NCBI GenBank assembly: GCA_965649825.1 | Contig: OZ287697.1 | Coordinates: forward strand, 1,722,351-1,786,350 | Length of the DNA stretch: 64,000 nucleotides | Source of the DNA: Penicillus capitatus | Taxonomy: Eukaryota; Plantae; Chlorophyta | Reading direction: 5' to 3' | In this document: positions 1 through 64,000 of the stretch, in pieces | How the letters are laid out: each line of letters starts with the position of its first letter | Numbering within the stretch: position 1 is the stretch's first letter | The notes under the pieces: generated by a model | The model's input: the letters and a program-made list of their open reading frames with translations, nothing else | Database searches by the model: none | Told to the model about the DNA's origin: nothing | Program-made: the position numbers and the translations under genes

Positions 1-982
1 CTTCGATGACAAAGTCTGTCAAGGTCACGTCGACGGCCCTACGTGTGAACGGTGCTGACATCGGTGCGACCGATGGAGCCAGCGCTTACCGAAATGTAAA
101 CAGTCCCTCGTTCTTCTGAGGACAGGTGAGCACGGTTCGCTTGTCAGAGATAGAAACGTTGACGTCGTCGTGCTCCCCTCGCCGGACGTAGCCGTTCATC
201 GTCAGTGGCCATGGAATAACGGTGCGCGAGGGAGGCCGGATCGTCTTCGTTATGTCGAGCAGCAGCAGCACGTCTCCTGGCCGAGAACAGTTGACGACGA
301 GCTGAAGGTCGTTCTCTATGTCGTTGAGAACTTCCGAGTTCAATAACCACTCTCCAGAAGCGGCGTTCCGGTAACGGCGACGCTGCTCCGCTGACAGATG
401 ACAGGCGACATCTGCGCAACGAAGATGGAACGTTTCAGTCGAGTCAGGAGGGCGCAGATCGAATGACGTTACCTGCCGTTTCCAGAGTCGTGAAAGATTC
501 TTGGAGCAACGTACGATGACGCTCCCGTACCTACGCAAAAAATAAGCAGCTGTTATTACACCATTTCAGTCAACGGATGGCAGAACTCACGAAGTGTGTC
601 AGCGTTTCGGTCTGGACTGCAGTGTCCAGTGGTAGAAGTTGGTCAGAACCTGTCCCATCTTCTGCGATAACACGAACAAAGAGTTTTGCTACAGGAAAAG
701 TGTCTTCTTGCCAGAGAGCGACGCTGTCTGTGTCAACTGCAGCTGCGTCGACTCAGGGACGCCCAAGTCATCCGCGAGTACGCAGAGGATGATACTCATC
801 ACTGACAGGCCGCAGAAGACAAGAGCACGTTTCTGACATAAGGGTGAAGAGAAAACCGCCATGTAGCCTCGCGTAAAGGGTTTCTTGCTGAACTCGATCA
901 GACGCTGCAACGGTCGAATAAACAGTCGTTGTATCAACAAACTCAAGATCAGAATGAGGAAGTTTATACAGAAGATGCGCAT
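1..982 (-). CDS. 5' part of a Pmp-like beta-helix/multi-TM family gene, running off the left edge; multi-exon
   Basis: ORF 86..538 encodes the family N-cap (DLQLVVNCSRPGDVLLLLDITKTIRPPSRTVIPWPLT...EGLFTFR), as in the copies at 20.6, 39.2 and 59.9 kb. A GT-AG intron at 39..89 occupies the same position as in those paralogs. A hydrophobic signal-like start MRIFCINFLILILSLL begins at 982 (start inferred). Confidence 0.7.
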
Positions 983-2505
983 CTGCCAAATCGTGCATTA
1001 GAGGATCAATTTTTCCGATTCCACTTCTCGAGAAGAAAGCGTTGCCCGCGCCATTAGAGCAGAGATTGAATCTAAAGCAATCATTCGATGATTTTTAGCC
1101 TTCGATATTTCGCGCAGTTCCACGTCGCGATGCAGGAAAACAAGAAAGTGGTTCCACAAATGCGTTCTGTCAATGTGACGACTACGAGAGATCTACGGTA
1201 ATGACCCCCAACGAAACGGTTTTGCAATTCGCAGCCTTTCGACTATGATAATCTGAAACAGCCAAAGGCAAACACGGAGGACGTTCGTCTTCTTGAATTC
1301 TATTGTGTGAAAGGACAGAACGCTGTTCTATAACAGATCAGACGTTCCCTTTGTTCAATTAGTCTTGTCGAAAAGGCACCTCCACTTAAACTGAAACGCA
1401 ACTCGCCCTTATTTTTAGAATGCCTCCGGGGCAGGTAGACATTAATGCGACCAATAGGATGACATAATCAACTGTCCACACAGCACTTGCGCACATCGCG
1501 GACGTGGATATAGGTAACTGGCGACACACTGCCAGATTGAAGGCCTATCCATCCGTTGCCCCAGCAAACCACCCATAGGAGACAAGCTAGATCTGAACTT
1601 CGAATTAGCACCATCAAGCCACACTGTGGTCGGAGCAGCACACTACCAGCGCCGCCGGACTGAACGATACAAGGGACGCATACTGGTATGACCATTCCCT
1701 GATCATCGCTCCCAGTGCGAATCAGTCATTGTAAGTTTCAATAAGCGCTCTGTCACTCCCTTGTATGCTGCTTTACCTACCTACGTTATCAAGCAGCCAC
1801 ATTCAAGCACGAAAGTAAAAAGACTGGAAGCTTTCACTACGTTGGTCAGTTCGCAACGCACGTAAACTCGTGCGCTGCACAAAGGATAGATGATATTGCA
1901 CGTGAGGAGGCTCCGTCTTCAGGGGCAAGTCAACCCTCGGGAAGGAAGTTGTGACGATGTCCCCTTCGTCTTCCTCACGCAAGAAAGTTCGCGTTCCCAT
2001 TCAGCCTCTCTCTCTATTCGTCATATTGCCGCGAAAACTAACAGACGGAAATGCTTCCTTGTGTTGTTGATGCCTTCGTGTACGGTATGGCTGTTCATCT
2101 ACTTCCCCTGTCACATCGCGGGATCGTCATTCTCAAGCCAAGATGAAGCGTTAATCGACAGACTGTCACATAACATGAGACAATTTCGTGCTTTTCTTCG
2201 GATAAATTCTTCCGGTTGCCAATTAAAGATGCGAGATCATAGATCAAATTTCCACCAGTTCCTATGAATTATTATTGCATAAAGCTTCTCACAATTCAGG
2301 GCAGCTTAAGCAACGAAAACAATGACTCGACAACAAAACAGAACATTATTGACGATCAAACAGTAACAGGACAGATGAATGACGACAGAGAAACACAAAT
2401 GGACAGTAACGCAATGAAGCCAAAATAAAACATTGATGAAACGGACAGACGAACGATCAGACTTATGCTGCGTACATGATACACATGTCGAGAGGGGTGA
2501 TGCAT

Positions 2506-5500
2506 TTAGGCACGTCCGGTATTATCTGGGGCTGTCGGGACAGGATGCCCCATCATGCGATTAAGAAGTCGATCCAGAGCTCTGGGGCAGCGCGATCGCA
2601 CATATACCTTTATCACGTGAAAGAATCCTTTCTCTGGATCGTAGTCAATGTTTTCAGCTTCTAAGATAGTTCTCAAATACTCGGCAGCAGCTTTGAAAAA
2701 TATAATGCCAAAAAACCCAACGATGCCCAAGTTTGCAAAGAGCAGAAAAATCGTCAGAAGGACTCGGACAGCATCCGAGGTACGGTCGTCGTTGAAGAAA
2801 AGGCCAGAGACGAATGTCAGCGAGCAGATGAGCAATGAAAGACCTTCGTATTCGTTAAGTGCTGCAAATTCTGAACGGAAGGGCTCGCAGACGATCTGAA
2901 AGTAAAGAGCAAACATCAGGACGCAGACACCCAGCACACCCTGCAGATTACCCCCGAGGGCGTAGGAGAAAACAACCACCACTGCTAAGATGGCCTTACG
3001 CAACATGATGACCGATTCCCAGTAGACGTACTTCGTCTGGTAGGCACGGTACATGAAACCGGTCGCCTCGAACAGCCACTCGCTCTCCATGTTGTGTCTC
3101 TTTCTCTCGAGCACCAGCAGCGCAGCGACGGCGGCGGGAAATCCGAAAGAAAAGATGATGAGGACGGGCCAGCCAATGAGGCCGGCAAGCACAGCATGGG
3201 AACCTTCATAGCATCGCAGAGACGTGTCCACTGCCCAGTAGGCATGCGTCGCATTCGAACCGAGCTCCAGTGAATCGTAGACATCGATGCAGGACAGGGC
3301 GTTGACAGCGGTCTTGGTGATGGCGATGTACGAGAGGTAGGAAACTGCCATGAAGCTGAGGATGCAGCGCTTGGCCAAGTAGCTGATGGTCTCGTTGAGG
3401 CGTGTGAAGGCAATGAACCAGGTGACAAAGTAGAGGCCTGACACCAGCATCGGTACCATGATGCTGACCACGGTGTGTATCGCCGATCGGGGAATGGCGG
3501 AATCCTTGGAGACGAGACAGTCCACGGAACGGGTCGCTGCTTCCGATGCCACACCGCCGAGAAACTCTGCAGTGACAGTTCGACTGCCCATCAGACAAAA
3601 ACAAGAATGCGGTGAAAACCTACCGGCTGTTTCAAAGATGCCGATGAGTGCCTCTGTCCAATCCACATTGATCGAGACAGCAACCGCAATCACTTGCAAG
3701 TAATTGATCGTTATCTAGATGAGATAATATGTGTGCGAAGAGTGAGAGTGGTACTGTTACCTTGAAGATTTCGACGGCCTTCCACTTGGCAAGCTGCTGG
3801 ATGTCGTTTCTTGGTTGCTCGGGCTCTTCTGGCGTCGGCGATCGCGGTGGCGACGGGGGAGTTGGTTGGAACCTGGACGACGCAAGGAACTCGGAGGGTG
3901 CGTGTCCCATACGCAGCATCTCGACGGTTTGCATGTTAAGTGCATGAGGTATTGCATTGGGCGACTCTCGCTTCTCTTCAGGAGCACGCGGAGGGGAAGT
4001 GGTCTCTATCGGCAGAATTGGCTGAGTCCCTTGCTGTCGATTTATATCTCTGATCAGTGTCTTCTTCGAAGGAAGACTGCTGCGGATGGCAAAGGTACTG
4101 AGAATGAGAAGAATGATGATAGAGATGAGCACCACCATGAAACTGCTGAACCCAACACGACAGGGCTCGCAACGGAAGGAACGCGTGCGGCCGTAAGAAG
4201 CCTCACAAGAACCGCACAGAGGACCTCTGTAACCCTATCGAGCAACAGAGGCGTCATACAACCATCAGGACTCCATGGCTGATGCGGGATACATACCTCG
4301 CGACATTGGACGTCGGCATAGCTCTGAATGAAGGGCTCGGAAAACTGGCACTCTTCGACGGTCGCTGCAAGCTTGTGCAGTTCTTTCGTTCTGTTCTTTT
4401 CGTCACAGGCGCGCTTTGTCAGACACTCTTGTATGTGATCTGAGCACGGGGTTCGATGCCAGTACCCAGAATCCGGGAGAATGACGACCGTGTCACAGTC
4501 GGCGTTGTCTGGGCACGACTGGCATCCTGGATCGGCACGATCTGGGAAGAAGTTGTAGGTGTTGCCGTTGCAGGGCTGACAGATGGTCCCGTTGGCCGCC
4601 ACAGCCTCGCCGATCGAACATCCTCGGATCTCGACGACAATGGTGAAGGGCGGAATGCTCTTCTCGCTAAAATCCACGCGGACGTTATAGAATCCAGCTT
4701 CGCGGTATCCAGCCACTCCTGAGAAGTTTCCTACCCCTTCGTCCAGTCTTACGCCGATGGATCCAGAGAACAGGCGATCAGGAGATGCCATAGTTGCCAC
4801 AACCGTGTCGTTTCCGGCACCGCTGGCGGGTCCCTGTCCCAAAGCATCCACTACCTCGACGTATAGACTGGGGATCTGCGTTCCACTGACATGGTTTCGC
4901 ACAAAGTATCGATTGCCTTTGACTTCCTCTTCGAAATCCCGATCTTCATAACGGATCACTTTTTTGACACGGCGAGCGTAAGAGGCCAGAGTGTTCCCGT
5001 AAACATCTGCTTCGTTTCCTTTCCACTTGGCGCAGATGCGGTCAAAGGAGTTGAGGATGTCCAGAGATTCGAATTCCTTCTTCGTCACGTAGCGATGAGA
5101 ATAACGGCGCGATCTGTTGGAGCAGCGAACACGGATGGCATTGAGATCGCTCGAGAGAATGGCGCCGCCTGCCGATGATGCTTGGTTTCCAGTGAAATGT
5201 GCGCTTCGCAGAGCGAGGAAGGTGCAGTTGGCGTTGTGTGCCGTGCAGTCCTTCCCCCCGTCTGCCGTTACCAGATGAATGGCCCCTGTTGAACACCGTA
5301 ACGACGACGGAAGAGATGAGGGCTGATCGATTACCTCCGAGAATCCCCCGGTTGTCTGAGAAGGTGCAGTTGTCGCACTGATAGGCGAGGAGTTGCGTCT
5401 TTTCTGATTCGATGTTGACAGCACCTCCCTTTCCGACGGCGAAGTTGTTATCGAACGCACAGTTGGTGCACAGCATGGACGATGAAACGTTGGCATGGAT

Positions 5501-8500
5501 CGCTCCCCCGTCAATGGACGCCCGGCATCCGATAAAGCGCACCTCGTCAGCCCAGAGATAAGACTCGTGCAGTTTTAGCGCTCCTCCCGACTTGGCACGA
5601 TTGGAGACGAAACTGGAACGGGAAATTGTCACAAAGCTGCCAGTTGCTGCATACAGACCGCCGCCCATGAAGGTGCTGGATCCGTTGATGACATCGACAC
5701 CATCCAGATTCAGTCGACCATCGAATACGGCAAACGCGGCTCCACGAATCGCTTCATTTTCCAGAAATCTTCCTCCTTGGACAGTCAGATTGCTGTGGTC
5801 TGCATTTGCCATTCCTCCATTTATCAAGGCGGAGTTGTTGTATGCATAACATGCTTCCATATGCCCGTCAGAATTATCCCTTAAGAATACCCCTCCGCCA
5901 AGTGGCGAGACATTCTGAATGAAAGAGACATTCGTCAGTCGGAGCGAACTTGCATCGTCTGCCATAACTCCGCCGCCAATGCTATCAGCAGTATTCTTGA
6001 AGAACGTCACATCATTGGCAAACAAGCTCGATGCTGTCGAGTGGATGCCTCCGCCATTGTCCTTGGCAAAGTTGTCTGACAAATCGGTGGATCGAATCGT
6101 CACGGCGGATTCGCTCAAAGTTAGAGCGCCTCCTGAGGTGTTCGTTTTGCACGCATTCACGACCGAGTTCGTCAAGTAGAGGATGCTTAAGTGCACCGAG
6201 ATCCCGCCACCGTAAGAGGCTTCCGAATGACTGAATCTTGAATCTGTGAGATTGGCACGCCCCTCAAAGACCGCAATACCGCCGCCAAAGCTGTCCGTTA
6301 TGCACGAAGATGTCGTGACATTGACAAACGTCACGGTTGAATTGTGTACAACCATGCCGCCTCCTGTATTTGTGGCCGAATTCGAGGCGACGATCGAATT
6401 GGTCACCAGCATATCGGACAATCCAACCAGATACAGTCCGCCACCTTGACTACTGGCGATGTTCTGAATGACACGGGATTGCTCCAGTGTTACTTGAGAT
6501 TCCGTTCCAGCGGACAAGGCGCCTCCAAAACTGGCGGCGTTGGCCTCGAAGAGGCAGTCAACGACACTTACAGTGCCGTTGGTGGTAGCGAGACCTCCAG
6601 CTGAGTCTACAGCGGAATTGGCATGGAAGACAACGCCGCTGAACTGAGCAGAGGAGTCTTTTACGCAGCTACCTGCACCGTCCTCTCCAGTGTTCTCTTC
6701 AAAAACGGAGTCCCGAAATGCTGCGTATGCTCCTTCGACGAGGGCACCTCCACCACACTCTGTGGCTGCGTCGTTTAACGTCCATGTCACATTGGTGAAG
6801 GTCGCCAAACAGTTTGCAATCACATTGCTGCCTCCACCTCCTTTCTCAGCTCTGTTCTGTCGAAATGTGGATCTTCGGACAGTGAGACGACCGTCTGTTC
6901 CGCAAGTCATGCCACCTCCGTAGCCCTCGGCAGCATTAGCCTCGAATGTGCAGTTGGCGATGGTGATATCTCCTTCTTGCATGTAAAAGCCTGCCCCAGA
7001 TGTCGCTTGATTGCGAGAGACAACCGTGTCTTCGATCTGCAGATCGACTTCGCCGAATTCGCCACCACCGCCGAAGCCTGTAGCGTTATTGCCGAGGAAA
7101 CGACATCTGGCGATATTCGCAAAGTTGGTCGACGCAACCGAAATCCCTCCGCCGTCTTCTGTTGCCAAATTTCCCTGAATGAGGGAGTCGTTCATCGCGA
7201 TCGAAGTCTTCCGGAGATGGAGACAGCCACCGACGGCTGCCGAGTTGAACTGACATGTCAGATTTCGCAAAGCGGCTGGAGAGGAGTCGCGGATGTCGAC
7301 AGCTCCTCCGTTACTCGATGCCGTGTTGCTGCGGAAGACGGTTCTCTCGATCGACAACGTTGTCTCTTCCACGTAAATCGCACCACCACTGATGTCTGCG
7401 CCATTCCTCTCGAATTCGGAATCGACCACTTCCACTTCGCCGCCGCCCACGATGCAAATGGCTCCCCCATCGTCAGCAGTGTTCTGAACGAAAGTGCTTT
7501 GTCGGATCTTCAACGTATCTGTGGCGTTCGAGAGGATGCCCGCTCCGGCGAGCGCTGGAACGAGGTTCTCGGAGAATGTGCAGTTTCGGACGTCGACGGT
7601 GAGGCAGCGGAAGAGGTGAACGGCTGTCCCGCCGACGGATCCTCTGTTCCGTTCGAAGTTCGAATCTCGGAGGGAGATGCTGGACCGGTCGGCGAAGAGA
7701 CCTGCACCCAGCAGCGCATTGCCGTCTTCGAAGCTGCATCGGCGGATGTCGGCTTCGGCGACAGTGAGGTAGACGCCGGCACCGTGCGCTTCGCCTTCTG
7801 TGTTGTCGATCTCTCTGTTCCGACGGAAGATCGAGTCCCTCATCTGCACCTCTCCGCGATGCACGTGCACAATGGGACCGTCGTTCTCCGATGCTACGAT
7901 GCTTCGAAGCGTCGTGCTGGATTCTGGAGGGGCGTAGAGGATGGCCGGAACGCCAGGCGCATCGATCTGCCTGTTGTCACGGATCCGAACGTTCGTCAGT
8001 TCGTTCTGGTTCGAGAGCACGGCGGCGCAGCGTCCAGAGCATGTGTTGCCCTCGAAGAGGACGTCGACCATCTCGACTGAGGAGCATGACTCCTCGTTCA
8101 GGAGCACGGCGACGGTGCCGTTGAGCTGATTCCGACGGAACACCACGTGATGCAGCTGGATGGTGCCGCGGTCGTCGTCGTCGTCGCATGCCCCGACGTC
8201 GATGATGGCGGTCGACTCGTCAGCGTTCAGGGCGCATTCCGCGAAGGCGAGATTCGCAAACAGGACGTCCGGAGACCTGAACTCCCAGACCTCATCGGAA
8301 TCGGTCGGCCATAAGGAATGATGCTCACCTCACGAGGAACAGGCTTTGGACATCGGGCTGGCAGATGAACGTCGTCTTCCGTCGAGTCTCTGGGAAGACG
8401 CCCTCGACGAGGTCGGTGTCCGGAGTGTCGGCAGTCAGTGTGAGTGACCAAGGAAGAGTGATCTGGCCAGAAGGTCGAAGTGTGTCGGAGACGTCGAAGA

Positions 8501-9064
8501 GAAGAGTGTCTCCCTCCTCGGAGCAGTTCACGATCTCCTGCAGATCTTCGTCGATGTCTCCCCAAAGCTCATCGTCGATGCGCCACGTTCTCGAACCGCC
8601 ATCCAACGCGCGGTCGATCACTCTTTCCGACAGATCGCACTCTGCAGACGACACACCTCACGCCGGCGACAGTTCTGCTGCTGCCGTACCGAAATCTCCG
8701 CCGAAGAAGTCCAACAGCTGGTGCAGTTTCCTCTGGGGCCGTGGGGTCTGGCGAAGAGATGGGAAGTTAGAGTGAGATGGATCGAAGGCGAATGTCGCAC
8801 TTTGAAGTGCTGTTCTTCGAAACGCTCGCTTCGCTGGGGGCGGATGTCGACCGAAGCCTTTCCTAAACAGCAGCACGCCCTCGCGCACGTTCTTCGTTTA
8901 AGGGCGAAGCTGCGCCCAAGACGGAAGCTGACGGGAGGTCAGTGGAGAGAGCTACCTGACTTCAGGACGGCGAGAGACAACGCCTCCAACCCTTGAGCAA
9001 GCAACAGGAAGCACAGCGCCGTGTGCACCGGACTCCTCCGTAATGAGTCGTAGTCGCGTCGCAT
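2506..9064 (-). CDS. Large Pmp-like (GGA[ILV]/FxxN) right-handed beta-helix protein with Cys-rich region and C-terminal multi-pass TM domain; multi-exon
   Basis: Exonic ORFs are 8325..8654 (N-cap), 5042..8146 (many GGAI/FxxN repeats), 4054..5514 (CQPC/CQSCPDNADC), 3632..4138 and 2506..3699 (about 7 hydrophobic helices, YWESVIMLRK). A signal-like start MRRDYDSLRRSPVHTALCFLLLAQGLEALSLA begins at 9064. The exact 5' exon joins are unresolved. Confidence 0.85.
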
Positions 9065-20133: not shown

Positions 20134-23100
20134 ATGCCAGCGAAGACCGAGCAAGTTTTTTCCCTCCTTTCGCTTGTGAGCGTTATCTCCGGCGTTGTCG
20201 CCGGAAGCGCGTTAACGGACCTAAGGTTAACGCCCACAAGTCATGCAATGACAACAGCGCCTGCTGGTAAGAGCATGGCGTTACTACTGCTGTCGGCAGC
20301 ACAGTGTTTCGTTTTGGATTGCAGAAGTGGACGACAAGCCTGCCATGCCCGTTCCAATCACCAAATCTGCATCATTCAAGACAGCCCTGTCGCTTCCAGT
20401 ACGTCTACCTTTCGACATAAGCAGTGCGGAGAGGGTCCTCTTTCGACGCCCAGGGAAGAAGCGATGTGCGCACCCTTCGCCAAGTGAACCTAGACGCTGA
20501 GGCGACAGCAGGTTCGTCCCATTCGCAGCCACGTCACGTCATGTCAATGACTGTGTTGTCGTGTTTTGGACAGGGGCCTCCTGTCGTCTTTCAACGGCGC
20601 AGCGTCGCCGTTATCTGAATGCTGCCACGCGAGAGTGGCTGCTCAACTCGGCAGTACTCGAAGAGATAGAGAACGACCTTCAGCTCGTCGTTAACTGTTC
20701 TCGACCGGGAGACGTGCTGCTGCTCGACACTTCAAAAACTATCCGTCCACCCTCTCGCACTGTCATCCCATGGCCACTGACGATACACGGCTACGTCCCG
20801 GGAGGAGAGCAGGACAACGTGGAAATTTCAGCCTCTGAAAAGCGAACCATCCTCACCTGTCCGCAGATGAACGAAGGACTGTTTTCTCTACGGTAAGTGC
20901 ATACTCCACCTGTCCTAACGATGTAACACGTGTCTGTTTTCAGGACCACTGATGTCACTCTAACAGACCTTGTCGTCAAAGGATGCGCGTTTGACGTTTC
21001 CGGAGAGTTGGATTCCATCATCGGCATCGAGGCGTGTGACTCTGAACTCGCTAGCGGAACCATCCGTCTGCATCACATCGGATTCAGAGAGAATCGTTTC
21101 TTTGGCGGAGCAGTCGCCATCCAGGCAAACGCAACAACCTGTTCAAGACTTGAGATCGAAGACTTCGATTTCCACGCGAACGCCTGCATTGGAGTCTGCG
21201 GTCTTGTTCTGGCAAAAGAGAACAGGATTCAGAATCTTTCTATGGAACAGAATCGACTGACATCATCTTTGCATTCCAGATCGGTGCTCGTTTTTGCTCC
21301 TCCTAAGTCCTCGACAGCTGCTGACGGGATCAGGGCTTTCGAGAACAGCTGTCCGATCTTTCAGATAGAAGGCGGTTCCTTCAATCTGTCAAACAGCATC
21401 TTCACGAAGAATTCTTTAACTGGTGTGGAAGACGATTCAATCAGTCCCTGTATCCAGCTCAGCGATGCATCTGTTTCGATCCAAGATAGCAGTTTTGAAA
21501 AGAACGAAGCAAGTTTTGGTGTGGCGATCAATGCACAAGGGTCAAACATTACTCTTAAGGATTGCATGTTTCGGGACAGCGTCGCTGGGATGAATGGGAC
21601 CATCTATCTACGGAATCAAAGTTCCTTGACGATCAACTCCTGTCGTTTTTTGTCAAACAGAGCTGATGGACATGGAGGAGGAATCTATTCGAATTACTCA
21701 ACCATTACTGCATGGGAAATGACTGCTGATGGAAACTGTGCTGTATCTGGAGGTGGCAGTATATCGATTACTTCAACATCCAATCTCACCGTGCATAACT
21801 CAGTATTCAAGAATGGTACCAGTCTTAGAGGAGGGGCAGTGGAACAGAGTGAGAACTCTGTGGGAAGATTCGTCGATGTGACCTTCGTTAACAATTCGGT
21901 CAATGAGGCAGGAGGATCCGTCTCTGCGAATAACGCAACTGTGGCTATTTACAACTCAAGATTCAGGGAGGGTGGTGTCACTCCAGGCTTTCGCATTGTG
22001 GCAGGTGGCTTTCTCTCCGCTACTCATAACAGCTCGGTTTTCGTAAAAAATACATCAATGATACATGGATCTGCAAAAGTGGGTGGTGCAATCGGTTTGA
22101 CGGAGTCCATTTTCGCAGCAAAGGACTTAAATGCGTCAAGTTGCGTAGCAAGTAATACTGGTGGAGCAGTGAACGCAATGAATTCTGAATTTCTCTGCAC
22201 AAACTGTTTGTTTGCTGAGAACATTGCCAACGGATTTGAAGGTCGTGGGGGTGGCGCCATCTCAGTCGATAGACAATGGCGTCACAAATCTATCATTCAA
22301 CTAAGAAAGAGCAAAATTCTGAAGAATAATGGGCCATTCGGAGGTGAATCTACTGAAATCGTGGATTGGGATTAATTGCAGTCGTTTGCTTTGCAGGGGG
22401 GCTTTATTTAGGCGAGCCATACTTTCCACGCTGCTTAGAGAACGGATACGAGTGCAACGCTGCAGCGATTATTGACACCCAGTTTGAGGAAAACAGGGCC
22501 ACCTTCGCTGGAGGAGCAATTTTTACGGAACACATGGAGATCATCAGATTCCAGTGCAATTCGTCGTCCAAGAATGGCAATCTGACGTTCACTGAAAAGA
22601 CAGATTGGAGCTTTTTGCATCCTATTACTTCCGAAGAGCTCCTCTGTCCTGCATGGAGAAACAATTCCGCCAGTTTTGCTGGGTATGGGCACATTGTCGG
22701 TTCATATGCCACGATGGCAAAGATGACTGTCGAGTACAAGGGAGAAAAGACAGAAGTCTTGACTGGGGGAGGATTCGAAGTTCAAGACTATGTCGGTGGC
22801 AACCAGCTGCCAACGCTGTCAGTGGAATTAATAGATGCACTGAAGCAAGGTCCGGCTACCATCGACTCCTTTAATGAGAGAATCAGCGCTACATTGTCGA
22901 CATCAGAAGGGTTTCGAGTCGGTGATGTTTCTATGCTTGTGGCACAACGAGTTGCCAAGTTTCCTCTTCTAATCGGTTTTGGATTACCGGGCGTCTACAA
23001 CATCACGATCACATTTTCGGATCAAGACAGCACTCTCGATGGCGCCTTTTACTTCAATGAATTCATTGATCCATTTATCATCACCGTCCATGTGCGAAAC

Positions 23101-25146
23101 TGCACTATTGGTGAAATGCCTGTCGGTGAGACGAAGATCTGCAGCAACTGCAGCACTTCTACCTACAACTTCGATCCTGAAGAAGAAGAGTGTCAGCCCT
23201 GTCCCGAGAATGGCAACTGCACGACAAGAGTGATCATTCCAAAGGCTGGGTACTGGCATGCGTCACCCTGCTCAGTCAACATTACGAGGTGCCTGACATC
23301 TTATGCATGCAAATTTGACAACCGCGTTGAGATATTGACAAACCTGACAAGAGACATGAAGAACTGCAGCATCAACGCTACCACGATTGAAGAGTATCAG
23401 AAAGAACAGTGTGCCGAGGCAAGTGATTGGTCACGACAAATCCGATCTTCTGAGTCTTTGTGTTCTGGGATTCAGGGTCACACTGGTCCTCTCTGTGGAG
23501 CATGCGACGCCTCTTATGGATCCTCCGTGTCTTCTGAATGCGAAGAATGCCCAACGGCATTTGGGAACATCGTGATCGTCAGCGTTTCAGCGTTGATCCT
23601 TCTTGGGTTGGCCGGCATTACTATTAGAGGAACACTGAATACCTTCAGCAGCAGACGGGCGATGCTTAGCGGCCATAGAAGAATTCCCCGCAGCATTCAG
23701 CTCAGAGATCTTTCGCTTCCATCTGAGGAAGAAGTCTCTGAAATACAGGCGTCTCAGGAGGATTCAGCCATGCTCCAAGATACAGATGGACTACAGAAAA
23801 GTGTGTCCGTCGCCGAAGTGACTCTGGGACAGTGGAAAGCGGTCGAGATGTTCAAAGTATAAAGTTCTCTATTTTTTGCGGAAGTGACAATTTTTGTTGC
23901 AGATAATGTTGAACTACATTCAGATGACAGTATTGATCGCATCACTGGATGTCGGATGGGCTGTCCCTATTCTTGTCATGGCAAAGATTACAGGTACACA
24001 GCTGCGAAAGCTGTTGATCTGTGTCTAACCCTCATCGTTGTGTGCTGTGCAGAGTTCCTTGGAGGACTCGCAGTGGATAGCATCCGACGTTCTGTGGTTT
24101 GTTTTGGCGGAGAGAACCAGTCACTGCATCCAACCGCATGGGCCTTTATCGTGAGTGTCTGTCTTGTTCCTGCATCTGTGTTCCTGCTGCTTGTGGTGTT
24201 CTGGATCACAATTGCACTCTTTCATCAAATCCGTCGTCCGATCCGCTACGTCATGCAAAGATCTCTGCTGTCTCTAATGGTTCTCTGGTATGTCACTTCC
24301 GTCCCAGTGATTAAGACGACTCTGAGCACAGTCCTTTGTGTCGACGCCTACAATGTTCTGGATGCGACGCCGGAGAAAGATGGCGAGAACAGCGACGTAA
24401 CGAAAGGAGAGATGGTCAGCTACTGGGCAGTTGACACAAGTCTGAAGTGCTTCGAAGAGGATCACCGGAGGCTGGTGGTTCTGATCATCTCGTTCGTCAG
24501 CCTTGTCTACGGCGGGCTGCTGATCGCCTTCATCGCCGTCCTTGGGTCCTCGGGAGAGCAGCTGAAAGACACAGACAGTTGGATCTACCAGACAATGGGA
24601 TTCCTGTATCGGAGCTACGGACACGGCCGTCGTCGCTACTGGGAGGTTGCTATAGTGGCACGGAAGGCTGGGGTAGCCTTTCTGGTGTTTTGCAGTCATC
24701 GCTTCGACAGCTCGCTGCCCATCGTCGGAGCTGCCGTCTTCCTGACGCTTGTCGTGAGTGTGCAGATTGTGGCGCTACCTTACAGGGACAGTTTCGACGA
24801 GCTAAACAAGATCGACATATTCTCTCTTTTCGTGTCGCTTTTAACGACACTTCTTGCAGCCATGATGAGGAGTGAGAGTCTTGCCATTGATGCTGGTCGC
24901 CTAGCTATTTCAATCCTGTGTGTTATTGTTAACATCACGACTCTCATCGTTTTTATTTCTTTTCTGTTCGGTTACTTTATTGCCTACGTTAGACTCTCCC
25001 TGAGAGAGAACGGAACGACAGTGGATTCCAATGCCAGTAGGCTCCATATCCTGAAGATCTGGTTGTTCTCTAACATTCAGAGTCTGGCTGTTTTCCTTGG
25101 CGTTTCCAAATCCGATGACAATTCGAGTATCTGTTCTGGCATATGA
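20134..25146 (+). CDS. Pmp-like beta-helix / Cys-rich / multi-TM protein (unit 1 copy), multi-exon
   Basis: Signal-like MPAKTEQVFSLLSLVSVISGVVAGS. Exonic ORFs 20561..20896, 20930..22375, 22366..23862 and 23884..25146 carry GGA/FxxN repeats, CQPCPENGNC, GHTGPLCGAC and a TM domain with YWEVAIVARK. Confidence 0.85.
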
Positions 25147-37547: not shown

Positions 37548-38274
37548 GAGGTGCACCGTCGGCTTTGTAGATTGACTGCGACGTGGTTGTCGTTGCTTCA
37601 AGTGTCGGCGGGCTGTTCGACGGCGCCTCTTGCGTACGACAGCTCTGTCGGCGTGTGACACGAGGCGTGGACGTCGCGTGCGCCATGTAATGCGGTCGCG
37701 TTACCGCGATTTGCGATGCGAGTACTAACAGCGCTTGATGTGACTTGAGTTCTCTTAGAAATGCACATCGTGGGCAGTTTGTGTCACACAGAAGGATGGA
37801 CGTTGGGTGAATCAGTTCGTCCACGACAGGCTTTGACCCTTATTACTCAAGGCCCGCTCGGGAGGACAGGTTCGCGACTGGATACGGCGCTTCGCTGTGC
37901 ATTAGCATGGAGACGCTGCCGTCATCGCATTCCTCCCACTATCGGTGCTCCGAAGATGGCGATACTGTTGCCAGAACTGAGACCGATAGTACGTTCTTCC
38001 GGTAAAATCGTCTCCAGACAGACTGCAAAAACAGATGACGAGAACAGGTTAGGCGTGTGAAATCGGACAAGGGAAATGCCAGCGAACTCCAATCCTCCAA
38101 CATCGTCACAGATGCGACCTCAGACTTGGTTGTTCTGAGACAGCAACGGAGGAACTTGTGGATTCACGTTGCACGCACCCGCATGCTGGTTCATAACTGC
38201 TCCAGAAACGCGTTCCTGACCCACTCTGTTTCTCCATCAGAGGCTCAGCTCCATCCACCAAATTCGCTTCCAAG

Positions 38275-41200
38275 ACAGAAGCGTTGTCGCCGCACGGAAG
38301 ACAAGGCAGTCCGCCGGGGACGAAACCTCGTGCCGGCGACGGTCGACGACGCGCCCAGTGCGCACTCACTCGCCGTCGACGCACGACAGGTCTGTGCTCG
38401 AGACTGGGTCGCCTGTTTGCCTCGCCTGTGTAGTCCATTTGCCCGAGTCTCGACTTGTCGACAAAACGAGACGGTGGATATCATCACAGCACGTTGGATA
38501 TTATGTGGACAGAGCGGCAGCATGCTGGAACGTGCTTCCACGGAAGGCCGTCATGTGTGGTCGCTGTCGCGCCAGCGCTGATGACCCCAGTTGCGTCAAG
38601 GGGCACCTACACTATAAAGCCCCTGACTTCGATTTGATCAAGCACACAGCACGAGTCAAAACCTTCTACACTGCGAACAACATGCGAGCGAAGGCTGAAT
38701 CAGTTTGTTCGGCCCTGTTGATCATGAGTACTACCTTCGGCCTCGTCGTCGGATGTGCGTTGACGGCCTCGACGTTGACGCACGCAAGGCATGCACCGAC
38801 ATCATCGCTTTCCGGTGACAGCATGGTTTACTGCTTCGTCACTCACCTGGCTGTTGGTTCTTAACTTCGCAGAACTGGACGACGAGCCTGTTGTGCCCGT
38901 TCCTAGTGCCAAGTCTGTATCGTTCAAACCAACCCTACAGCCTCAAGTACGTCTACCTTCTCTGCACAAGCAACGCGGAGAGGGTCCTATCTCGGCGCCC
39001 AGGGAAGAAGCGACGCGCGGACCCTTCGCCAAGTGAGCCAAGATGGCAAGGCGACAGCAGGTTCGTTCCATTCGCTGTCACGTCGCGCCTCGTAGCTGAC
39101 TGTGCTGTCGCGTTTTCGCTAGAGGTCGCCTGTCGTCTGTCGAAGGCGAGGCGTCGCCGTTATCTGAATGCCAAGACGAGAGAGTGGTTGCTCAACTCGG
39201 CAGTCCTCGACGAGATACAAGACGACCTCCAGCTCATCGTCAACTGTTCTCGACCGGGAGACGTGCTGCTGCTCGACACCACGAAGACAATCCGGCCTCC
39301 TTTACGCACCGTCATCTCATGGCCGCTGACGATCAGCGGCTACGTCCCGGGAGGAGAGCACGACAGGGTCAACACTGCTGCCTCGGAGAAGCGAACCATC
39401 CTCGTCTGTCCGCAGATGAACGAAGGACTGTTCACATTTCGGTAAGCTCAGACTCTATCCGTCCTAATGATGTTAGATGTGTTCGCTCGCAGGACCACTG
39501 ATGTCACTCTGACGGACCTTGTCGTAGAAGGGTGCCTATTCGTCGTTTCTGGCACATCGGAGTCCGTCATCGGCTTCGAAAAGTGTGACCCTAAAGCCAC
39601 CAGGGGACTCACTGGGGGAACCATTCGGCTAGATCGCATCGGATTCAGAGAGAATCGTTTTCTTGGCAGATCAGTTGCCATCCAAGCGAACGCGTCATCC
39701 TGCTCAAAACTGGAGATCGAAGATTTCTACTTCCAGAAGAACACCTGCAATGGAGTCTGCGGTCTTCTTCTCGCCAAAGCGAACAGGCTCCAGAACATCA
39801 CCATCAGACAGAATCGACGAATATCATCGCTCAATGGAGTCAACGATCTGCTTCTGACCGAAGAGAACAGACTTCAGAAACTTTCCATGGAACATTTCCG
39901 ATCGATACCATCCTTATCTTCCAGATCGGTGATCATTTGGGCACCTCCTCGGTCCTCGACATCTGCCGAAAACATCAGTGCTTCGGAGAATAGTTGTGCC
40001 ACAATCGAGGTCGACGGAGGCTCCTTCGGTCTGTCAAACAGCATCTTCAGGAAAAACGCGGCAACCGATGAGGAGGGAGACGACTCCATCAGTGCCTGTA
40101 TCAAGATGAAAGACGCATCTGCTGTCATCCGTGACTGCAGTTTCGAGGAGAACGAAGCAAGTTACGGTGTGGCGATCAATGCTCGAAGATCGAACATCAC
40201 TCTCGAAGATTGTGCATTCCGTGGCAATGTTGCTGGGATGGACGGGACCATCTATCTCCGGAATAGAAGTTCCTTGACGATCGACTCCTGTCGGTTTTCG
40301 CGGAACAGAGCCGAGAAGTCTGGTGGTGCAATCTATGCACAGAATGCCGAACTGAGCGTCACACACTTGACCTGTGTGCAGAACAACGCTACACTGAAGG
40401 GAGGGTGTCTGCACGTGGCCGGGTTCGGCTCAGTGAAGATGACCGACTCTGTCCTGAAAGGAAACAGAGCTCGCTCAGGCGGCGCTCTACATCTCAGAAA
40501 TACATCAGCAGCAATCGACAGCTCGAAGTTTTTATCGAACCGAGCTGAAAAACTGGGAGGAGGAATCCGTTCGATCGGCTCAAACATCACTGCAAATGGA
40601 ATCATAGCTGACGGTAACCACGCTGAATATAGAGGTGGCAGTGTTTCGATCGCTTCAAGATCCAATCTCACCGTGCACGACTCAGTCTTCAAGAACGGCG
40701 CCAGTTCTAGGGGAGGAGCAGTCGAACAGAGTGAGAACTCTGTGGGAAGGTTCGGCAATGTGACCTTCGTGGACAATTTGGTTGATGAGGAAGGAGGCGC
40801 CATCTTTGCGGATAACGCGACAGTGATTATTCATAACGCAAGATTCAGAAATGTTAGATCTGGTACTCAATCGTATCTCTCAGGCCGAGGCGGCTTTCTA
40901 TTCGCGAGGCATCACAGCTCAGTTTTCGTCGAACATGCAACGATGACAAAAGTAACTGCGGGAAATGGCGGGGCGATCTTCTTAGAAGATTCCGTCTGCA
41001 CGGCAAAGCAGCTAAACGTGTCAAAGTGCACTGCAGTATTTGCTGGTGGAGCAGTAGTCGTTGGAAGTTCTGAATTCCTCTGCACAAACTGTCTTTTTGC
41101 TTCGAATACGGTCTCGACTATTGGCGGAGGTGCCATTTATATCACTAAAAACAGACGCCGCAGATCTATTGTCCAATTACAGGAGAGCAAAATAATAAAC

Positions 41201-43266
41201 AATAGTGGGAGATGGGGAGGTGAATCTACTAAATCATGCATTGATGGAGCATCTTTATTGGTTTGTTTCGTAGGGGGTCTTCATGTTTATGACAGCCGAA
41301 AGTGCTTAAAAGACGTATACAAATGCATTGCTGTAGTTATCATTGACACTCAGTTCGAGGGAAACAGTGCCTATGAGGCTGGAGGAGCGATCTTTGCAGA
41401 CCGCTTGGAAAACATCAGATTTCAGTGCAACTCGTCATCCAAGAATGGCAATCTGAAATTCTTGGAAGAAAAAGAATGGAGTTCTTTGAACCGTATTACA
41501 CCCGACACGACTCTCTGTCCTGCGTGGAAAAACAATTCTGCTGGCATCTACGGGGAGGTTGTTGGTACAATGGCCACCATGGCGAAGATGACTGTCGAGT
41601 ACAAGGGAGAGAAAACAGAAGTCTTGACTGGAGAAGGATTCGAAGTTCGAGACTATGTCGGTGGCAACCAGCTGCCAACGCTGTCAGTGGAAATGCTGGA
41701 TGAACTGAAACAGGGTCCGGCGAACGCCAACACGATCGGTCCGGATGGTATGGCTACATTGACAGCATCAGAAGGGTTTCAAGTTGGCAGTTCTTCTCTG
41801 TCTGTGGAAGGACAGACTGCCAACTTTCCTCTTCTGATCGGTTTTGGATTGCCGGGCATCTACAACATGACAATTAGATTCGCGAGGCACGAATGTGCTG
41901 GAGATCATAACAACAGCGCATTTGTCGATCCATTAACCATCACCGTCCATGTGCGAAACTGCACTGTTGGTGAAATGCCCGTCGGTGAGACGAAGATCTG
42001 CAGCAACTGCAGCACCTCTACGTACAACTTCGACCCTGAAGCAGAAGAATGTCAGCCCTGCCCTGAGAACGGGAACTGCAAGACAAGAGTGATCGTTCCG
42101 AATGATGGATACTGGCACGCGTCTCCCTGTTCCGTCAACATTACGAGGTGCCTGACCTCGTATGCATGCAAATTCGACGATCGCGATGAGAGATTGACAA
42201 ACCTGACAAGAGACATGAAGAACTGCAGAATCAACGCTACCACAGTTGAGGAGTATCAGCAAACTCAGTGTGCTGAGGCGAGTGATTGGTCAGCCTTTTG
42301 ATCTTCTGAGTCTTTGTGTTCTGGGATTCAGGGCCACACGGGTCCTCTCTGTGGAGCATGCAACACCTCGTATGGATCCTCCGTGTCTTCCAGATGCGAA
42401 GAATGCCCCACGGCATTCGGCAATGTCATGACGATTTGCTCTGCGACAGTGATCCTACTTATTCTGTCCGGTGTTACGATCAGAGGGACACTGAGTACCG
42501 CTAGCAGCAGACTGGCGATGCTTTCCGGCCATCGAAGAGTTCCCCGCAGTATTCAGCTCAGAGATCTTTCGCTTCCAGCCGAGCCAGAAACGTCTGAGAT
42601 ACAGGCGTCCCAGGAGGAGTCGCCTGCGATCCAAGACACGAACGAATGTCAAGAAAGCCTGACTGTCACCGAAGTGACCCTGGGACAGTGGAGAGCGGTC
42701 GAGATGTTTAAAGTATGAAGCTATGTGGCATTCGTGAGACTGACAGTCTTCGTTGCAGATAATGTTGAACTACGTTCAGATGACAGTGCTGATCGCATCA
42801 CTGGATGTCGGATGGGCAGTTCCTATACTTGTCATGGCAGAGATATCAGGTCCGCATCTGCGAAAGCTGACAGAATGTTTCCACCCTTCATCGTTGTGTG
42901 CTGCACAGAGTTCTTTGGAGGATTCGCGGTGGACAGTACCCGACGTTCTGTTGTTTGTTTGGGCGGACACGACCAGTCACTGCATCCAACCGCATGGGCC
43001 TTTGTCGTGAGTGTCTGTCTTGTTCCTGCATGTGTGGCGTTGGTGTTCATCGTGTTCTGGATCACAGTTGCACCATTTCATCAGATCCGTCGTCCGGTCC
43101 GCTACGTCATGCAGAGATCTCTGCTGTCTCTGATGGCTCTTTGGCATATTACTTCTGTTCCGGTGATCAAGACGACTCTGAGCACAGTCCTTTGCGTCGA
43201 CGCCTACAATGTTCTGCATGCGACGCCGGAGAAGGATGATGAGACGACCATAGATGGGACGAAAGG
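38275..43266. repeat. Recent segmental duplication, copy at 59006..64000
   Basis: Offsets are 20731 and 20734 bp. ORF translations are identical outside 40832..41765, and looser similarity extends left to about 37460/58194. Confidence 0.92.
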
Positions 43267-44005
43267 AGAGATGGTCAGCTACTGGGCAGTTGACACAAGT
43301 CTGAAGTGCTTCGAAGAGGATCACCGGAGGCTGGTGGTTCTGATCATCTCGTTCGTCTCCCTCGTCTACGGTGGACTCCTGATCGCCTTCGTCGCCATCC
43401 TTGGATTCTCAGAAGACCGGCTGAACGACACGGACAGCTGGATCTACCAGTCTGTGGGATTCCTCTACCGCAGCTACGGACACGGGAGGCGTCGCTACTG
43501 GGAGCTTGCAATTGTGGCAAGGAAAGCAGGGATTGCTTTCCTGGTGTTCTGCAGCCATCGCTTCGACAGCGTGCTGCCCATCTTCGGAGCTGCCGTCTTC
43601 CTGACGCTTGCCGTGAGTGTACAGATTGTGGCGATGCCCTACAGGCAGAGTTTCGACGACCTGAACAAGATCGACACATTCTCTCTTTTCGTGTCGCTTC
43701 TGACGACACTTCTTGCAGCCATGATGAAGAGTGAGAGTCCTACCATTGATGCTGGTCGCTCAGCTATCTCATTTCTGTTTGTTTTCCTCAACATCACGGC
43801 TCTCGCCGTTCTGCTCTCGTTTCTTTTTCGTTACTCCGTTGCCTACGTTAGACTCTCCCTGAGAGAAAGCGGAACGAGAGTGGATTCTGATGCCACTGCG
43901 CTGCATGTGCTGGGGATCTGGTTGTCTTGTATGACTCGGAATCTGGCTGTTCTTCTTGGGTTTTCCAAGCACGATGACAAGTCGAGCATCTGTTCCGGCA
44001 TGTGA
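38682..44005 (+). CDS. Pmp-like beta-helix / Cys-rich / multi-TM protein (unit 2 copy), multi-exon
   Basis: Start MRAKAESVCSALLIMSTTFGLVVGC. Introns 38815-38872, 38948-39003 and 39061-39123 restore the frame into the N-cap. Main exonic ORFs are 39467..42301, 42314..42718 and 42725..44005. Confidence 0.87.
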
Positions 44006-56410: not shown

Positions 56411-57006
56411 GTGTGGCAAAACGGATATTGGTTGTTTCTGTGGGACGTTGTCGTCCGTATTACATGTCTCTTGACGGACGGCCTAGAAATGGCGTGTAAG
56501 GAAAGAGGCAGGTTGTGTCTATCATCCCTAAAGAGTGACTTGGCGATGAGCACAATAGCACAAATCTCACTCTTTGAAGGCAATGGTACGTGATGATCAT
56601 CAATCGTCAACCAGACAACAGACACGACCGTCAAGCGCTAACAATTCAGTAGACTCACTATTTGACAAACAGACATGATCGTTGATAGAGGCCAAGAGAG
56701 GGACTGTGTCGCGATGGACTTGCTTGCTTTGTTCTTACGGTTAATCTATTCCATTGCTTCGAAGGCTCTCACACATGGACATTTGCTGAATAGTATTCAT
56801 TCTTCGCTATTCGCCTGTTGCGTCGATCTGATTTTAAGATCTCTGAGACGAGGGATTATCCCTTCACCTAAAAGGCCAAGAACTCCGAAGTCGTGTCCGT
56901 AGCGAAATTCGGTTCCTGAAGCTGCGCCAGCAGAATAAGCTAGCTACGTTCGAGAACCGTCGAGTTTATCTTCTTCCGACAAATTGAAGTAATTGCATCC
57001 GTCAGG

Positions 57007-62400: not shown

Positions 62401-64000
62401 ACCAGCTGCCAAGGCTGTCAATGGAATTGCTGGATGAACTGAAACAGGGCCCGGCGACCATCGACTTACTGAATGAGAGAATCTTCGCCGAAGTTTCAAC
62501 ATCAGAAGGGTTTCAAGTTGGCAGTTCTTCTCTGTCTGTGGAAGGACAAACTGCCAACTTTCCTCTTCTGATCGGTTTTGGATTGCCGGGCATCTACAAC
62601 ATGACAATTAGATTCGCGAGGCACGAATGTGCTGGAGATCATAACAACAGCGCATTTGTCGATCCATTAACCATCACCGTCCATGTGCGAAACTGCACTG
62701 TTGGTGAAATGCCCGTCGGTGAGACGAAGATCTGCAGCAACTGCAGCACCTCTACGTACAACTTCGACCCTGAAGCAGAAGAATGTCAGCCCTGCCCTGA
62801 GAACGGGAACTGCAAGACAAGAGTGATCGTTCCGAATGATGGATACTGGCACGCGTCTCCCTGTTCCGTCAACATTACGAGGTGCCTGACCTCGTATGCA
62901 TGCAAATTCGACGATCGCGATGAGAGATTGACAAACCTGACAAGAGACATGAAGAACTGCAGAATCAACGCTACCACAGTTGAGGAGTATCAGCAAACTC
63001 AGTGTGCTGAGGCGAGTGATTGGTCAGCCTTTTGATCTTCTGAGTCTTTGTGTTCTGGGATTCAGGGCCACACGGGTCCTCTCTGTGGAGCATGCAACAC
63101 CTCGTATGGATCCTCCGTGTCTTCCAGATGCGAAGAATGCCCCACGGCATTCGGCAATGTCATGACGATTTGCTCTGCGACAGTGATCCTACTTATTCTG
63201 TCCGGTGTTACGATCAGAGGGACACTGAGTACCGCTAGCAGCAGACTGGCGATGCTTTCCGGCCATCGAAGAGTTCCCCGCAGTATTCAGCTCAGAGATC
63301 TTTCGCTTCCAGCCGAGCCAGAAACGTCTGAGATACAGGCGTCCCAGGAGGAGTCGCCTGCGATCCAAGACACGAACGAATGTCAAGAAAGCCTGACTGT
63401 CACCGAAGTGACCCTGGGACAGTGGAGAGCGGTCGAGATGTTTAAAGTATGAAGCTATGTGGCATTCGTGAGACTGACAGTCTTCGTTGCAGATAATGTT
63501 GAACTACGTTCAGATGACAGTGCTGATCGCATCACTGGATGTCGGATGGGCAGTTCCTATACTTGTCATGGCAGAGATATCAGGTCCGCATCTGCGAAAG
63601 CTGACAGAATGTTTCCACCCTTCATCGTTGTGTGCTGCACAGAGTTCTTTGGAGGATTCGCGGTGGACAGTACCCGACGTTCTGTTGTTTGTTTGGGCGG
63701 ACACGACCAGTCACTGCATCCAACCGCATGGGCCTTTGTCGTGAGTGTCTGTCTTGTTCCTGCATGTGTGGCGTTGGTGTTCATCGTGTTCTGGATCACA
63801 GTTGCACCATTTCATCAGATCCGTCGTCCGGTCCGCTACGTCATGCAGAGATCTCTGCTGTCTCTGATGGCTCTTTGGCATATTACTTCTGTTCCGGTGA
63901 TCAAGACGACTCTGAGCACAGTCCTTTGCGTCGACGCCTACAATGTTCTGCATGCGACGCCGGAGAAGGATGATGAGACGACCATAGATGGGACGAAAGG
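59413..64000 (+). CDS. Pmp-like beta-helix / Cys-rich / multi-TM protein (unit 3 copy), truncated by the window end
   Basis: Same exon structure as 38682..44005 at +20731 bp, with ORFs 59622..60176, 60198..63035 and 63048..63452. Confidence 0.87.

Follow-up and report, generated by a model that had tools for sequence, protein, structure and literature searches.

The stretch of DNA analysed here, a window of 64,000 nucleotides that corresponds to positions 92,533-28,534 (reversed) of the 576,620 bp contig ctg340394_13x_l of the ENA metagenome assembly ERZ25074695, carries an array of genes for what appear to be large surface receptors. Its G+C content ran from about 47 to 62% and many of its open reading frames (ORFs) were broken, the long ones falling into a GGA/FxxN-rich, beta-helix-like class, a cysteine (Cys)-rich and then hydrophobic class, a Ty3/gypsy gag-pol pair and a few ordinary genes. 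A tblastn search with the ORFs of one copy recovered five full-length relatives and an N-terminal fragment at the left window edge, and self-comparison of the window placed the receptor genes within repeated units. Together with spliced alignments, the tblastn search bore out the copy count of an earlier note on this DNA, which had described six genes and one relic sharing one architecture; A, B, C and D are whole, E and F are truncated at the window edges, and the relic is frameshifted. The encoded proteins combine a beta-helix ectodomain of the chlamydial Pmp type with a Cys-rich stalk and a module of nine transmembrane (TM) helices and, on the profile comparisons described below, the stalk and membrane module belong to the core family of the alveolate cysteine repeat modular proteins (CRMPs). 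The genes and their parts are as follows.

38682..44005, + strand: gene D (the reference), 1627 aa, nine exons and eight introns of 46-62 nt
38682-38814, 38873-38946, 39003-39060, 39123-39441, 39493-41219, 41274-42277, 42332-42712, 42759-42849 and 42909-44005, + strand: exons of gene D
9064..2506, - strand: gene A ('A-type'), about 2050 aa
8281-5335, - strand: beta-helix exon of gene A, long and uninterrupted, much longer than in D
5285-4297, - strand: middle domain and Cys-rich stalk of gene A
4234-2506, - strand: nine-TM core of gene A, with GYRGPLCGSC at 4234
20134..25146, + strand: gene B, 1523 aa, 9 exons, intact, without stops or frameshifts
30076..35901, + strand: gene C, stalk and nine-TM core of the D type, N-terminal model approximate
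59413..>64000, + strand: gene E, cut at aa 1381 by the right window end, complete (1628 aa) in the parent contig
814..<1, - strand: gene F, 5' part only, covering the signal-peptide exon, the N-terminal cap domain and the first part of the beta-helix; the whole gene lies in the parent contig
45826-46763, + strand: relic, A-type C-terminal fragment (last TM helices and tail) with 4 frameshifts and 1 stop

Gene D was modelled by hand, for which the 5' regions of B, D and F were aligned three ways as DNA and frame-keeping GT/GC..AG introns were enumerated. The other copies were modelled with a protein-to-DNA aligner with intron states, written for this analysis, which reproduced the D model exactly. 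The beta-helix parts of A, C and F were taken from ORFs instead of the D template, since repeat numbers differ between copies and the D template produced spurious long 'introns' there. The modelled exons of gene A keep an open frame throughout (1955 aa from 8641 on); a putative ATG with a hydrophobic leader behind it lies at 9064, the exon structure from there to 8641 being provisional. Relative to D, gene B has about 100 beta-helix residues fewer, roughly four coils, at a synonymous divergence (dS) of 0.51. The beta-helix of gene C is divergent, G+C-rich and interrupted by at least 7 extra short introns, and a canonical intron of 43-57 nt could be placed at each ORF break. Gene E is a near-copy of D, with 94% protein identity, and gene F as a whole is 50% identical to D by spliced alignment, its model being provisional at the extreme 5' end, as regards the first intron and an apparent frameshift around window position 711. 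Further family fragments were sought in the spacers at 14.2-17.4, 25.2-29.9 and 52.4-58.8 kb, where only background scores were obtained, and nothing in the rest of the window beyond A-F and the relic scored above background.

The domains of the reference protein, and the GHTGPLCGAC motif in the several genes, were located as follows.

39493..41450, + strand: beta-helix of Pmp-type repeats in D, aa about 195-830, with an intron at 41220-41273
41451..41932, + strand: middle beta-rich domain of D, aa about 831-990, strands in the AlphaFold2 model
41933..42421, + strand: Cys-rich stalk of D, containing GHTGPLCGAC at 42332-42361, with a GC-AG intron (42278-42331) inside the span
42419..44002, + strand: nine-TM module of D, comprising TM1, a disordered linker, an 8-helix bundle and the motif GFLYRSY..YWE..RK
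23476 (B), 34261 (C), 42332 (D) and 63066 (E), + strand: GHTGPLCGAC
4234, - strand: GYRGPLCGSC, the counterpart in gene A

Each gene opens with a signal-peptide-like start (judged by eye), and in D the leader and the first 95 or so residues were disordered in the AlphaFold2 model; the D ectodomain holds 23 NxS/T sites. The repeats that follow had been taken in the earlier note for the GGA[ILV]/FxxN signature of Pmps, forming a beta-helix, and several lines of evidence agreed with this. The Pfam family Chlam_PMP (PF02415) matched the beta-helix exons of D and A with E-values of 3e-15 and 5e-9. Each ectodomain contains GGA[ILV] 6-11 times and FxxN 10-22 times, against 0.1-0.3 and 3-5 in shuffled sequences, so that the enrichment is 20- to 80-fold and 3- to 5-fold, respectively, and the observed counts were reached in 0 of 500 shuffles. 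The commonest spacing of the motifs was 26 residues. AlphaFold2 modelled the D ectodomain (1137 aa, from a 29-row alignment) with a mean predicted local distance difference test (pLDDT) score of 75.5, rising above 90 over aa about 400-830, where the chain forms a continuous run of three-strand coils. When this model was compared with the PDB by Foldseek, the top listed matches were almost all right-handed parallel beta-helix proteins, among them PL6 alginate lyases, phage tailspikes and depolymerases, the PfbA adhesin and Ag43. Since the E-values of these matches were marginal (3e-4 to 0.08), the model supports the right-handed beta-helix as a fold class and implies no specific relative.

The middle domain of D includes the most variable stretch of the family, at aa about 905-935. 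The stalk, which has 15 Cys in 145 residues, agrees with the CxxC-rich stalk that had been noticed after the beta-helix, and GHTGPLCGAC was present in B, C, D and E, the four + strand copies to which it had been ascribed. Pfam matches to the stalk (Ephrin_rec_like, DUF7630 and TNFR_ELAPOR1) were weak and below the cut-off in the window genes, and above it in relatives.

Hydropathy analysis of the C-terminal module gave seven strong and two weaker hydrophobic segments. AlphaFold2 modelled the 522-residue module of D (44-row alignment) with a pLDDT of 84.8 and a predicted TM-score (pTM) of 0.85, as TM1, an acidic and disordered linker some 75 residues long, and an eight-helix bundle (1 + 8), with a short Cys-bearing outer beta-hairpin between the fourth and fifth helix. 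Thus both approaches gave nine helices instead of the seven or so that had been proposed. The topology is predicted to place the N-terminus outside and the C-terminus inside, and the conserved C174, C253 and C291 (numbered along the 522-aa module) are invariant columns in two loops placed outside. A Pfam scan of the membrane module returned no family, including no 7TM or TRP/PKD match; a PDB sequence search with the module profile yielded a chance match only (E 0.19), and Foldseek of the module model against the PDB gave a best E-value of 0.11, with TM-scores of at most 0.24. The best match to a G protein-coupled receptor (GPCR) had an E-value of 0.11, a TM-score of 0.11 and a root-mean-square deviation of 29 A, no TRP or polycystin (PKD) entry appeared among the 50 best-ranked Foldseek matches, and no known transporter was matched below E 0.1. 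As Foldseek of a confidently modelled core gave nothing below E 0.1, the GPCR-like, TRP/PKD-like and known-transporter readings were dropped, and the AlphaFold and Foldseek comparison that had been suggested as a way to choose between a GPCR-like and a TRP/PKD-like domain favoured neither.

A relative was found instead among the CRMPs. The core sequences of TgCRMPA and TgCRMPB (S2 Table, PMC9815656) were compared by hhalign with a profile of 44 family sequences, and the profile matched the TgCRMPA core with a probability of 99.9% and an E-value of 4.5e-32 over 381 columns, and the TgCRMPB core with 97.4% and 1.5e-11. A control in which TgCRMPA was reversed, with composition and hydrophobic blocks kept, scored 0.4% and 0.16. 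The alignments to the CRMPs span the Cys-rich element through to the last helices, and the family motif G.TGPLCGAC..Y......C..CP aligns with TEYLCSECRRGY...CTSCP of TgCRMPA, directly N-terminal of TM1. Pairwise BLASTP of D against TgCRMPA gave 25% identity over 135 aa (E 1e-4), a weak match that is nevertheless in register. On the strength of the hhalign matches, the reversed control and the in-register BLASTP, the stalk and membrane module are, by sequence comparison, homologous to the 'conserved core' of the alveolate CRMPs, a Cys-rich EGF-like element plus nine TM helices; the ectodomain itself is not CRMP-like. The earlier description of a multi-pass signalling or channel module was therefore right as to multiple passes, and the module is a homologue of the CRMP core, neither an orphan nor a channel-like unit.

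In the CRMPs, the conserved core consists of EGF-like domains and nine TM helices, CRMPA and CRMPB form a heterodimer, and the proteins are needed for rhoptry discharge in Toxoplasma (PMC9815656, PMC9670195). CRMPs are likewise required for mucocyst discharge in Tetrahymena (PMC9815656, PMC9670195), their role in triggered discharge being known only from knock-outs in these two organisms and in Plasmodium (PMC9670195, PMC9815656). In the CRMP literature the family is regarded as alveolate, and homologues in Dictyostelium are mentioned only briefly (PMC9815656). The algal proteins resemble the CRMPs (TgCRMPA/B, PfCRMP1-4, PbCRMP1-4 and TtCRMP1/2) in the Cys-rich EGF-like element before TM1 and the homologous core, in the nine helices (reported for Toxoplasma and Plasmodium) and large outside N-terminal ectodomain that are predicted here, and in the motifs NY.Q (in TM2), SxDCL, GFL..G(Y/F)....YWE....RK and QP(F/Y)....L(N/D)..E. 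They differ in that the CRMP ectodomain is built of Kringle, MAR or EGF modules and the algal one of a Pmp-type beta-helix, and in that CRMPs occur in alveolates as 2-4 dispersed genes, in contrast to a large tandem family in a green alga, with identity only about 16-25%. The heterodimer and the role in exocytosis are features of the alveolate proteins and putative for the algal family.

A homology search with the module returned 82 proteins, nearly all of them unnamed ORFs of ENA assemblies on many contigs, and the family apparently has dozens of members in the assembly to which the window belongs. An exact look-up of the product of the last exon of A in the contig index matched no record. 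A profile search of 1.84 billion cluster representatives gave 8494 matches at E <=1e-3 and 503 at E <=1e-30. The former figure is an upper bound, as part of the stalk falls within the profile, too; many of the matches were 1300-3400 aa long with the matched region C-terminal. The closest named relatives were 11 proteins of Caulerpa lentillifera, and the named matches also included one protein of Blepharisma stoltei. The Caulerpa proteins (EukProt EP00210, e.g. P003957 and P000407) and the Blepharisma 'LNR domain-containing protein' (CAG9330614.1) run alike from Pmp repeats through a Cys-rich stalk and DUF7630 to the core, and many metagenome proteins have this overall architecture. Some of the database relatives carry extra modules (LNR repeats, duplicated ectodomain-core units), unlike the window genes, which are at most 40% identical to their database relatives outside the core. 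A search of the literature for Pmp repeats in eukaryotes or Bryopsidales found nothing relevant in what is searchable; the Chlamydomonas gamete receptor MAR1, followed as a lead, is single-pass and without Pmp repeats and was set aside. Thus the architecture is present in public databases, but no description of it was found in the searchable literature.

Two other systems invite comparison. Chlamydial Pmps likewise have GGA[ILV]/FxxN repeats with a period of about 26 residues, a predicted right-handed beta-helix and a multigene organisation, but they belong to the type V autotransporters of bacteria and have a beta-barrel at the C-terminus, in contrast to the Cys-rich stalk, alpha-helical nine-TM core and spliceosomal introns of the algal genes. 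No autotransporter Pfam match was obtained in the window ORFs, the C-terminus being an alpha-helical nine-TM bundle in the AlphaFold2 model. Adhesion GPCRs, with which CRMPs have been compared (PMC9670195), are alike in joining a large adhesive ectodomain to a multi-pass signalling core and in the conversion of contact into an intracellular signal that has been proposed, as for CRMPs (PMC9670195). They differ in having seven helices instead of nine, and the algal proteins gave no GPCR fold match and no GAIN domain by Pfam.

The exon-intron structures also united the copies. All 8 introns of D (46-62 nt) have counterparts in B and E that match them in position and phase, gene A shares five of them (positions 771, 1105, 1232 and 1263 and one near 195), C has at least 3 in common with D, and the introns of F correspond to those of D after aa 69, 89, 195, 771, 1105, 1232 and 1263. 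The conservation of several intron positions claimed earlier is thus confirmed, and the short GT-AG and GC-AG introns uphold the assignment of the genes to a eukaryote. The introns concerned are as follows.

5334-5286, 4296-4235, 3760-3715 and 3623-3567, - strand: gene A introns, equivalent to D positions 771, 1105, 1232 and 1263
34205-34260, 34642-34689 and 34781-34840, + strand: gene C introns, equivalent to D positions 1105, 1232 and 1263
42278-42331 (D), 23419-23475 (B) and 63012-63065 (E), + strand: GC-AG intron before the GHTGPLCGAC exon

Directly ahead of the GHTGPLCGAC exon, the intron starts with a GC donor, GCGAGT or GCAAGT, in four copies: B, D, E and G, the last of which is described below. 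In A (4296-4235), C (34205-34260) and F (outside the window) the donor is GT. As judged from the splice sites, the GC donor is a derived character that these four copies share and by which they group together.

The array continues beyond the window in the parent contig. Gene E is completed there and is followed by an unrelated RelA/SpoT-type gene; to the left lie the remainder of F, then G, and then H on the opposite strand. The array thus comprises at least 9 intact genes and the relic in about 85 kb, counting the window and its parent-contig flanks, and contains two divergent core types that are about 29% identical, the A type (A, H and the relic) and the D type (B-G). The additional copies and the duplicated segment are as follows.

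Flank-locus 6448-11572, about 10 kb left of the window: gene G, D-type, 70% identical to D, with the same introns
Flank-locus 15287-21417, - strand, parent contig about 107.1-113.3 kb: gene H, A-type, 82% identical to A, with the same five introns
37457..43266 (holding D) and 58194-64000 (holding E): segmental duplication, 96.4% identity over 5.8 kb

The repeat unit is about 19-21 kb long and consists of an F-box/leucine-rich-repeat (LRR) gene or fragment, a receptor gene and downstream sequence. Gene C lies between the units of B and D, and a retroelement and the relic lie between those of D and E. The relic is identical to the C-terminus of A at 79 of 129 aa, and its segment 45828-45977 is 87% identical to 2745-2894. 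Between D and E, every nucleotide is identical over codons 1-638 and 971-1627, and divergence is confined to aa about 639-970 (about 40823-41872 in D and 61554-62606 in E), where dS reaches 0.55; parts of this tract of E are 88-95% identical to G but only 56-88% to D. Unless the assembly is at fault, this D/E mosaic looks like what gene conversion or unequal exchange among paralogs would leave behind. Comparison of the copies showed, at the level of the DNA, that the array has grown by tandem duplication of the 19-21 kb unit, with loss of copies (the relic) and shuffling of ectodomain segments. Birth-and-death evolution, as the earlier note had it, is accordingly what the tandem units, the relic and the D/E mosaic display.

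Pairwise ratios of nonsynonymous to synonymous substitution rates (dN/dS) were below 1 in every domain and every pair (0.14-0.9). For the pairs among B, D and G, they were as follows.

Whole gene: 0.31-0.39
Cys-rich stalk: 0.14-0.16
Eight-helix bundle: 0.21-0.33
Beta-helix: 0.34-0.45
Middle domain: 0.41-0.82

On these ratios, the stalk and core are under purifying selection. The sole 60-codon window with dN/dS above 1 (aa 891-950, 1.2-2.0 in comparisons with D) was not significant (Fisher P >=0.13), and a 31-codon cut in the same region, chosen after the fact, gave a P-value of 0.07. Birth-and-death evolution with segment shuffling was thus shown, and diversifying selection was not.

The ordinary genes of the window gave an indication of the host. 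A block of them at 9242-12384 separates A from the first F-box/LRR gene and has the highest G+C content in the window (about 60%). It includes an EMC3 gene (9242-10119, +), whose product was 74% identical to a EukProt record with a Caulerpa lentillifera-style identifier (gNNNN.t1), 72% to Bryopsis sp. KO-2023 and 69% to Ostreobium quekettii, with other green algae at 57% or less. As EMC3 is closest to bryopsidalean sequences, the host is a bryopsidalean, that is, a siphonous, coenocytic green alga, distinct from each of the three already sequenced. An RCC1-repeat gene (10997-9867, -) abuts head to head a gene for a DCD (development and cell death) domain (11023-12384, +; PF10539, E 5e-34), which fits a green-lineage genome. 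A second contig of the same assembly, ctg340592_344x_l (6.9 Mb, 344x, also in NCBI), carries family members only 42-44% identical to D, and the sample probably holds two related algae, or the host alga plus a second one.

F-box genes with LRRs are found among the receptor genes, together with fragments by D and E that are N-terminal only, are about 90% identical to 18319-19077 and are carried with the duplication unit. The Ty3/gypsy-type retroelement lies between D and E, its long terminal repeats being only provisionally delimited. Tandem repeats occur in the spacers (14595-14970 and 27884-27989; 73 nt x 3.1, 80 nt x 2.0 and 39 nt x 2.7 copies), and there were no tRNA genes in the window. These features are as follows.

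12829-14166, + strand: F-box/LRR gene
19268-17357, - strand: F-box/LRR gene
36884-37633, - strand: F-box/LRR fragment by D
57001-57562 and 58194-58369, - strand: F-box/LRR fragments by E
47599-56321, + strand: region of the retroelement
48097-49488, + strand: gag/protease ORF of the retroelement (zf-CCHC, Asp_protease_2), open
49527-52361, + strand: pol ORF of the retroelement (RVT_1, Integrase_H2C2, rve), open
47599-47777 and 56143-56321: direct repeats at the retroelement, 96% identical
52332-52569 and 53822-54059: direct repeats at the retroelement, 100% identical

On balance, we consider it probable that the array encodes surface sensors or adhesins of the CRMP type whose ectodomain is a Pmp beta-helix. 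These would be very large, type-I-like surface proteins of 1500-2050 aa, produced from a tandem array in the nuclear DNA of a siphonous green alga and laid out as a cleavable leader, an N-terminal cap, a right-handed beta-helix of 26-residue coils, a middle domain, a Cys-rich stalk and the nine-helix module. The beta-helix and middle domain would bind a ligand outside the cell, most probably a surface glycan or protein, and the nine-TM core, perhaps as a dimer of an A-type with a D-type protein, would by analogy with the CRMPs relay binding to the cytoplasm. The same analogy suggests that the output could be triggered secretion, as in alveolates, where such a signal triggers regulated exocytosis. 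A bolder form of this proposal holds that the CRMP core is an ancient eukaryotic contact-sensing module to which coenocytic algae joined Pmp beta-helices and expanded arrays, and that A-type/D-type heterodimers answer surface contact or wounding with a rapid, regulated secretion, for example the release of wound-plug or cell-wall material; in this specific form we regard it as unlikely, and in our analysis the link to exocytosis is rated much lower than the general reading as a sensor or adhesin.

Several considerations weigh against the reading as CRMP-type sensors or adhesins. The identity to the CRMPs in the profile alignment is low, at about 16%, and the gene models come from sequence logic and paralog comparison, not from RNA. 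The parent contig belongs to a 13x long-read metagenome assembly, in which the long identical stretches of D and E could be assembly-affected. The function of CRMPs is known only in alveolates, which have dedicated extrusive organelles, and a green alga is not known to have any such machinery. What the algal family does is, moreover, entirely a matter of inference.

Other explanations account for parts of the same evidence. The proteins might be passive adhesins or wall anchors, in which the beta-helix ties the plasma membrane to the wall, the substrate or epibionts and the core is a non-signalling anchor. Chlamydial Pmps and the Foldseek neighbours PfbA and Ag43 are indeed adhesins, and Pfam recognised no signalling domain in the cytoplasmic parts. 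However, one helix would suffice as an anchor, whereas the eight-helix bundle is among the more conserved parts (dN/dS 0.21-0.33) and is kept across eukaryote supergroups; conservation of this kind, where a single helix would do, points to a function of the core itself, and we think a purely passive role unlikely. The suggestion of the earlier note that the array evolves like an immune or self-recognition locus, which would mean selection for diversity in ectodomains that recognise microbes or conspecific cytoplasm, could draw on the tandem array with its relic, the exchange of ectodomain segments between copies, the location of the most variable stretch in the ectodomain, the F-box/LRR genes interleaved with the receptor genes and the apparent dozens of members in the assembly. 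Tandem arrays with gene conversion are, however, common in many surface gene families, and with dN/dS below 1 in all domains and pairs, and no window significantly above it, the comparison with an immune locus found no backing in the selection analysis; we hold such a role to be unlikely as well.

Two further proposals fared worse. If the nine-TM core were a ligand-gated channel or transporter, conducting ions or a solute under the control of the ectodomain, this would accommodate the conserved polar and charged residues in or beside its helices (H296, E356, R362/K363 and N410) and a fold that is otherwise without a PDB match by Foldseek. Yet Foldseek found no channel or transporter with E <0.1, the TM-scores reached at most 0.24, the AlphaFold2 model has neither internal repeats nor pore-loop features, and the work on CRMPs gives no hint of transport (PMC9815656, PMC9670195), which makes this explanation very unlikely in our view. 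It is more improbable still that the proteins are membrane-tethered enzymes whose beta-helix acts as a lyase, epimerase or glycosidase on wall polymers. The best structural neighbours do include PL6 alginate lyases, phage depolymerases, the AlgG epimerase and polygalacturonase, but these matches are weak (E 3e-4 to 0.08, TM-scores of 0.1-0.4 and 8-14% identity) and reflect the shared fold only, and in sequence the region matches the non-catalytic Pmp repeat and no lyase or hydrolase family.

The CRMP core itself was already known; what is new is a Pmp-type beta-helix on that core, tandemly expanded in a green seaweed. A poorly understood receptor core is thereby placed in free-living green algae, behind a quite different ectodomain and, by database matches, also in ciliates and many uncultured protists, which weakens the view of the module as specific to alveolate extrusive organelles. 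For the parasites, whose invasion sensor has an ill-understood core, this gives a wider comparative base, a much deeper alignment in which functional residues of the core may be located, and non-pathogenic, possibly tractable organisms in which to study it. It also follows that 'Chlamydia Pmp' annotations in eukaryote genomes can mark genuine, intron-bearing receptor genes and not bacterial contamination. For the coenocytic seaweeds, the array reveals a large and rapidly reshuffled family of surface proteins, whose members are candidates for the sensing of contact, wounding and epibionts.

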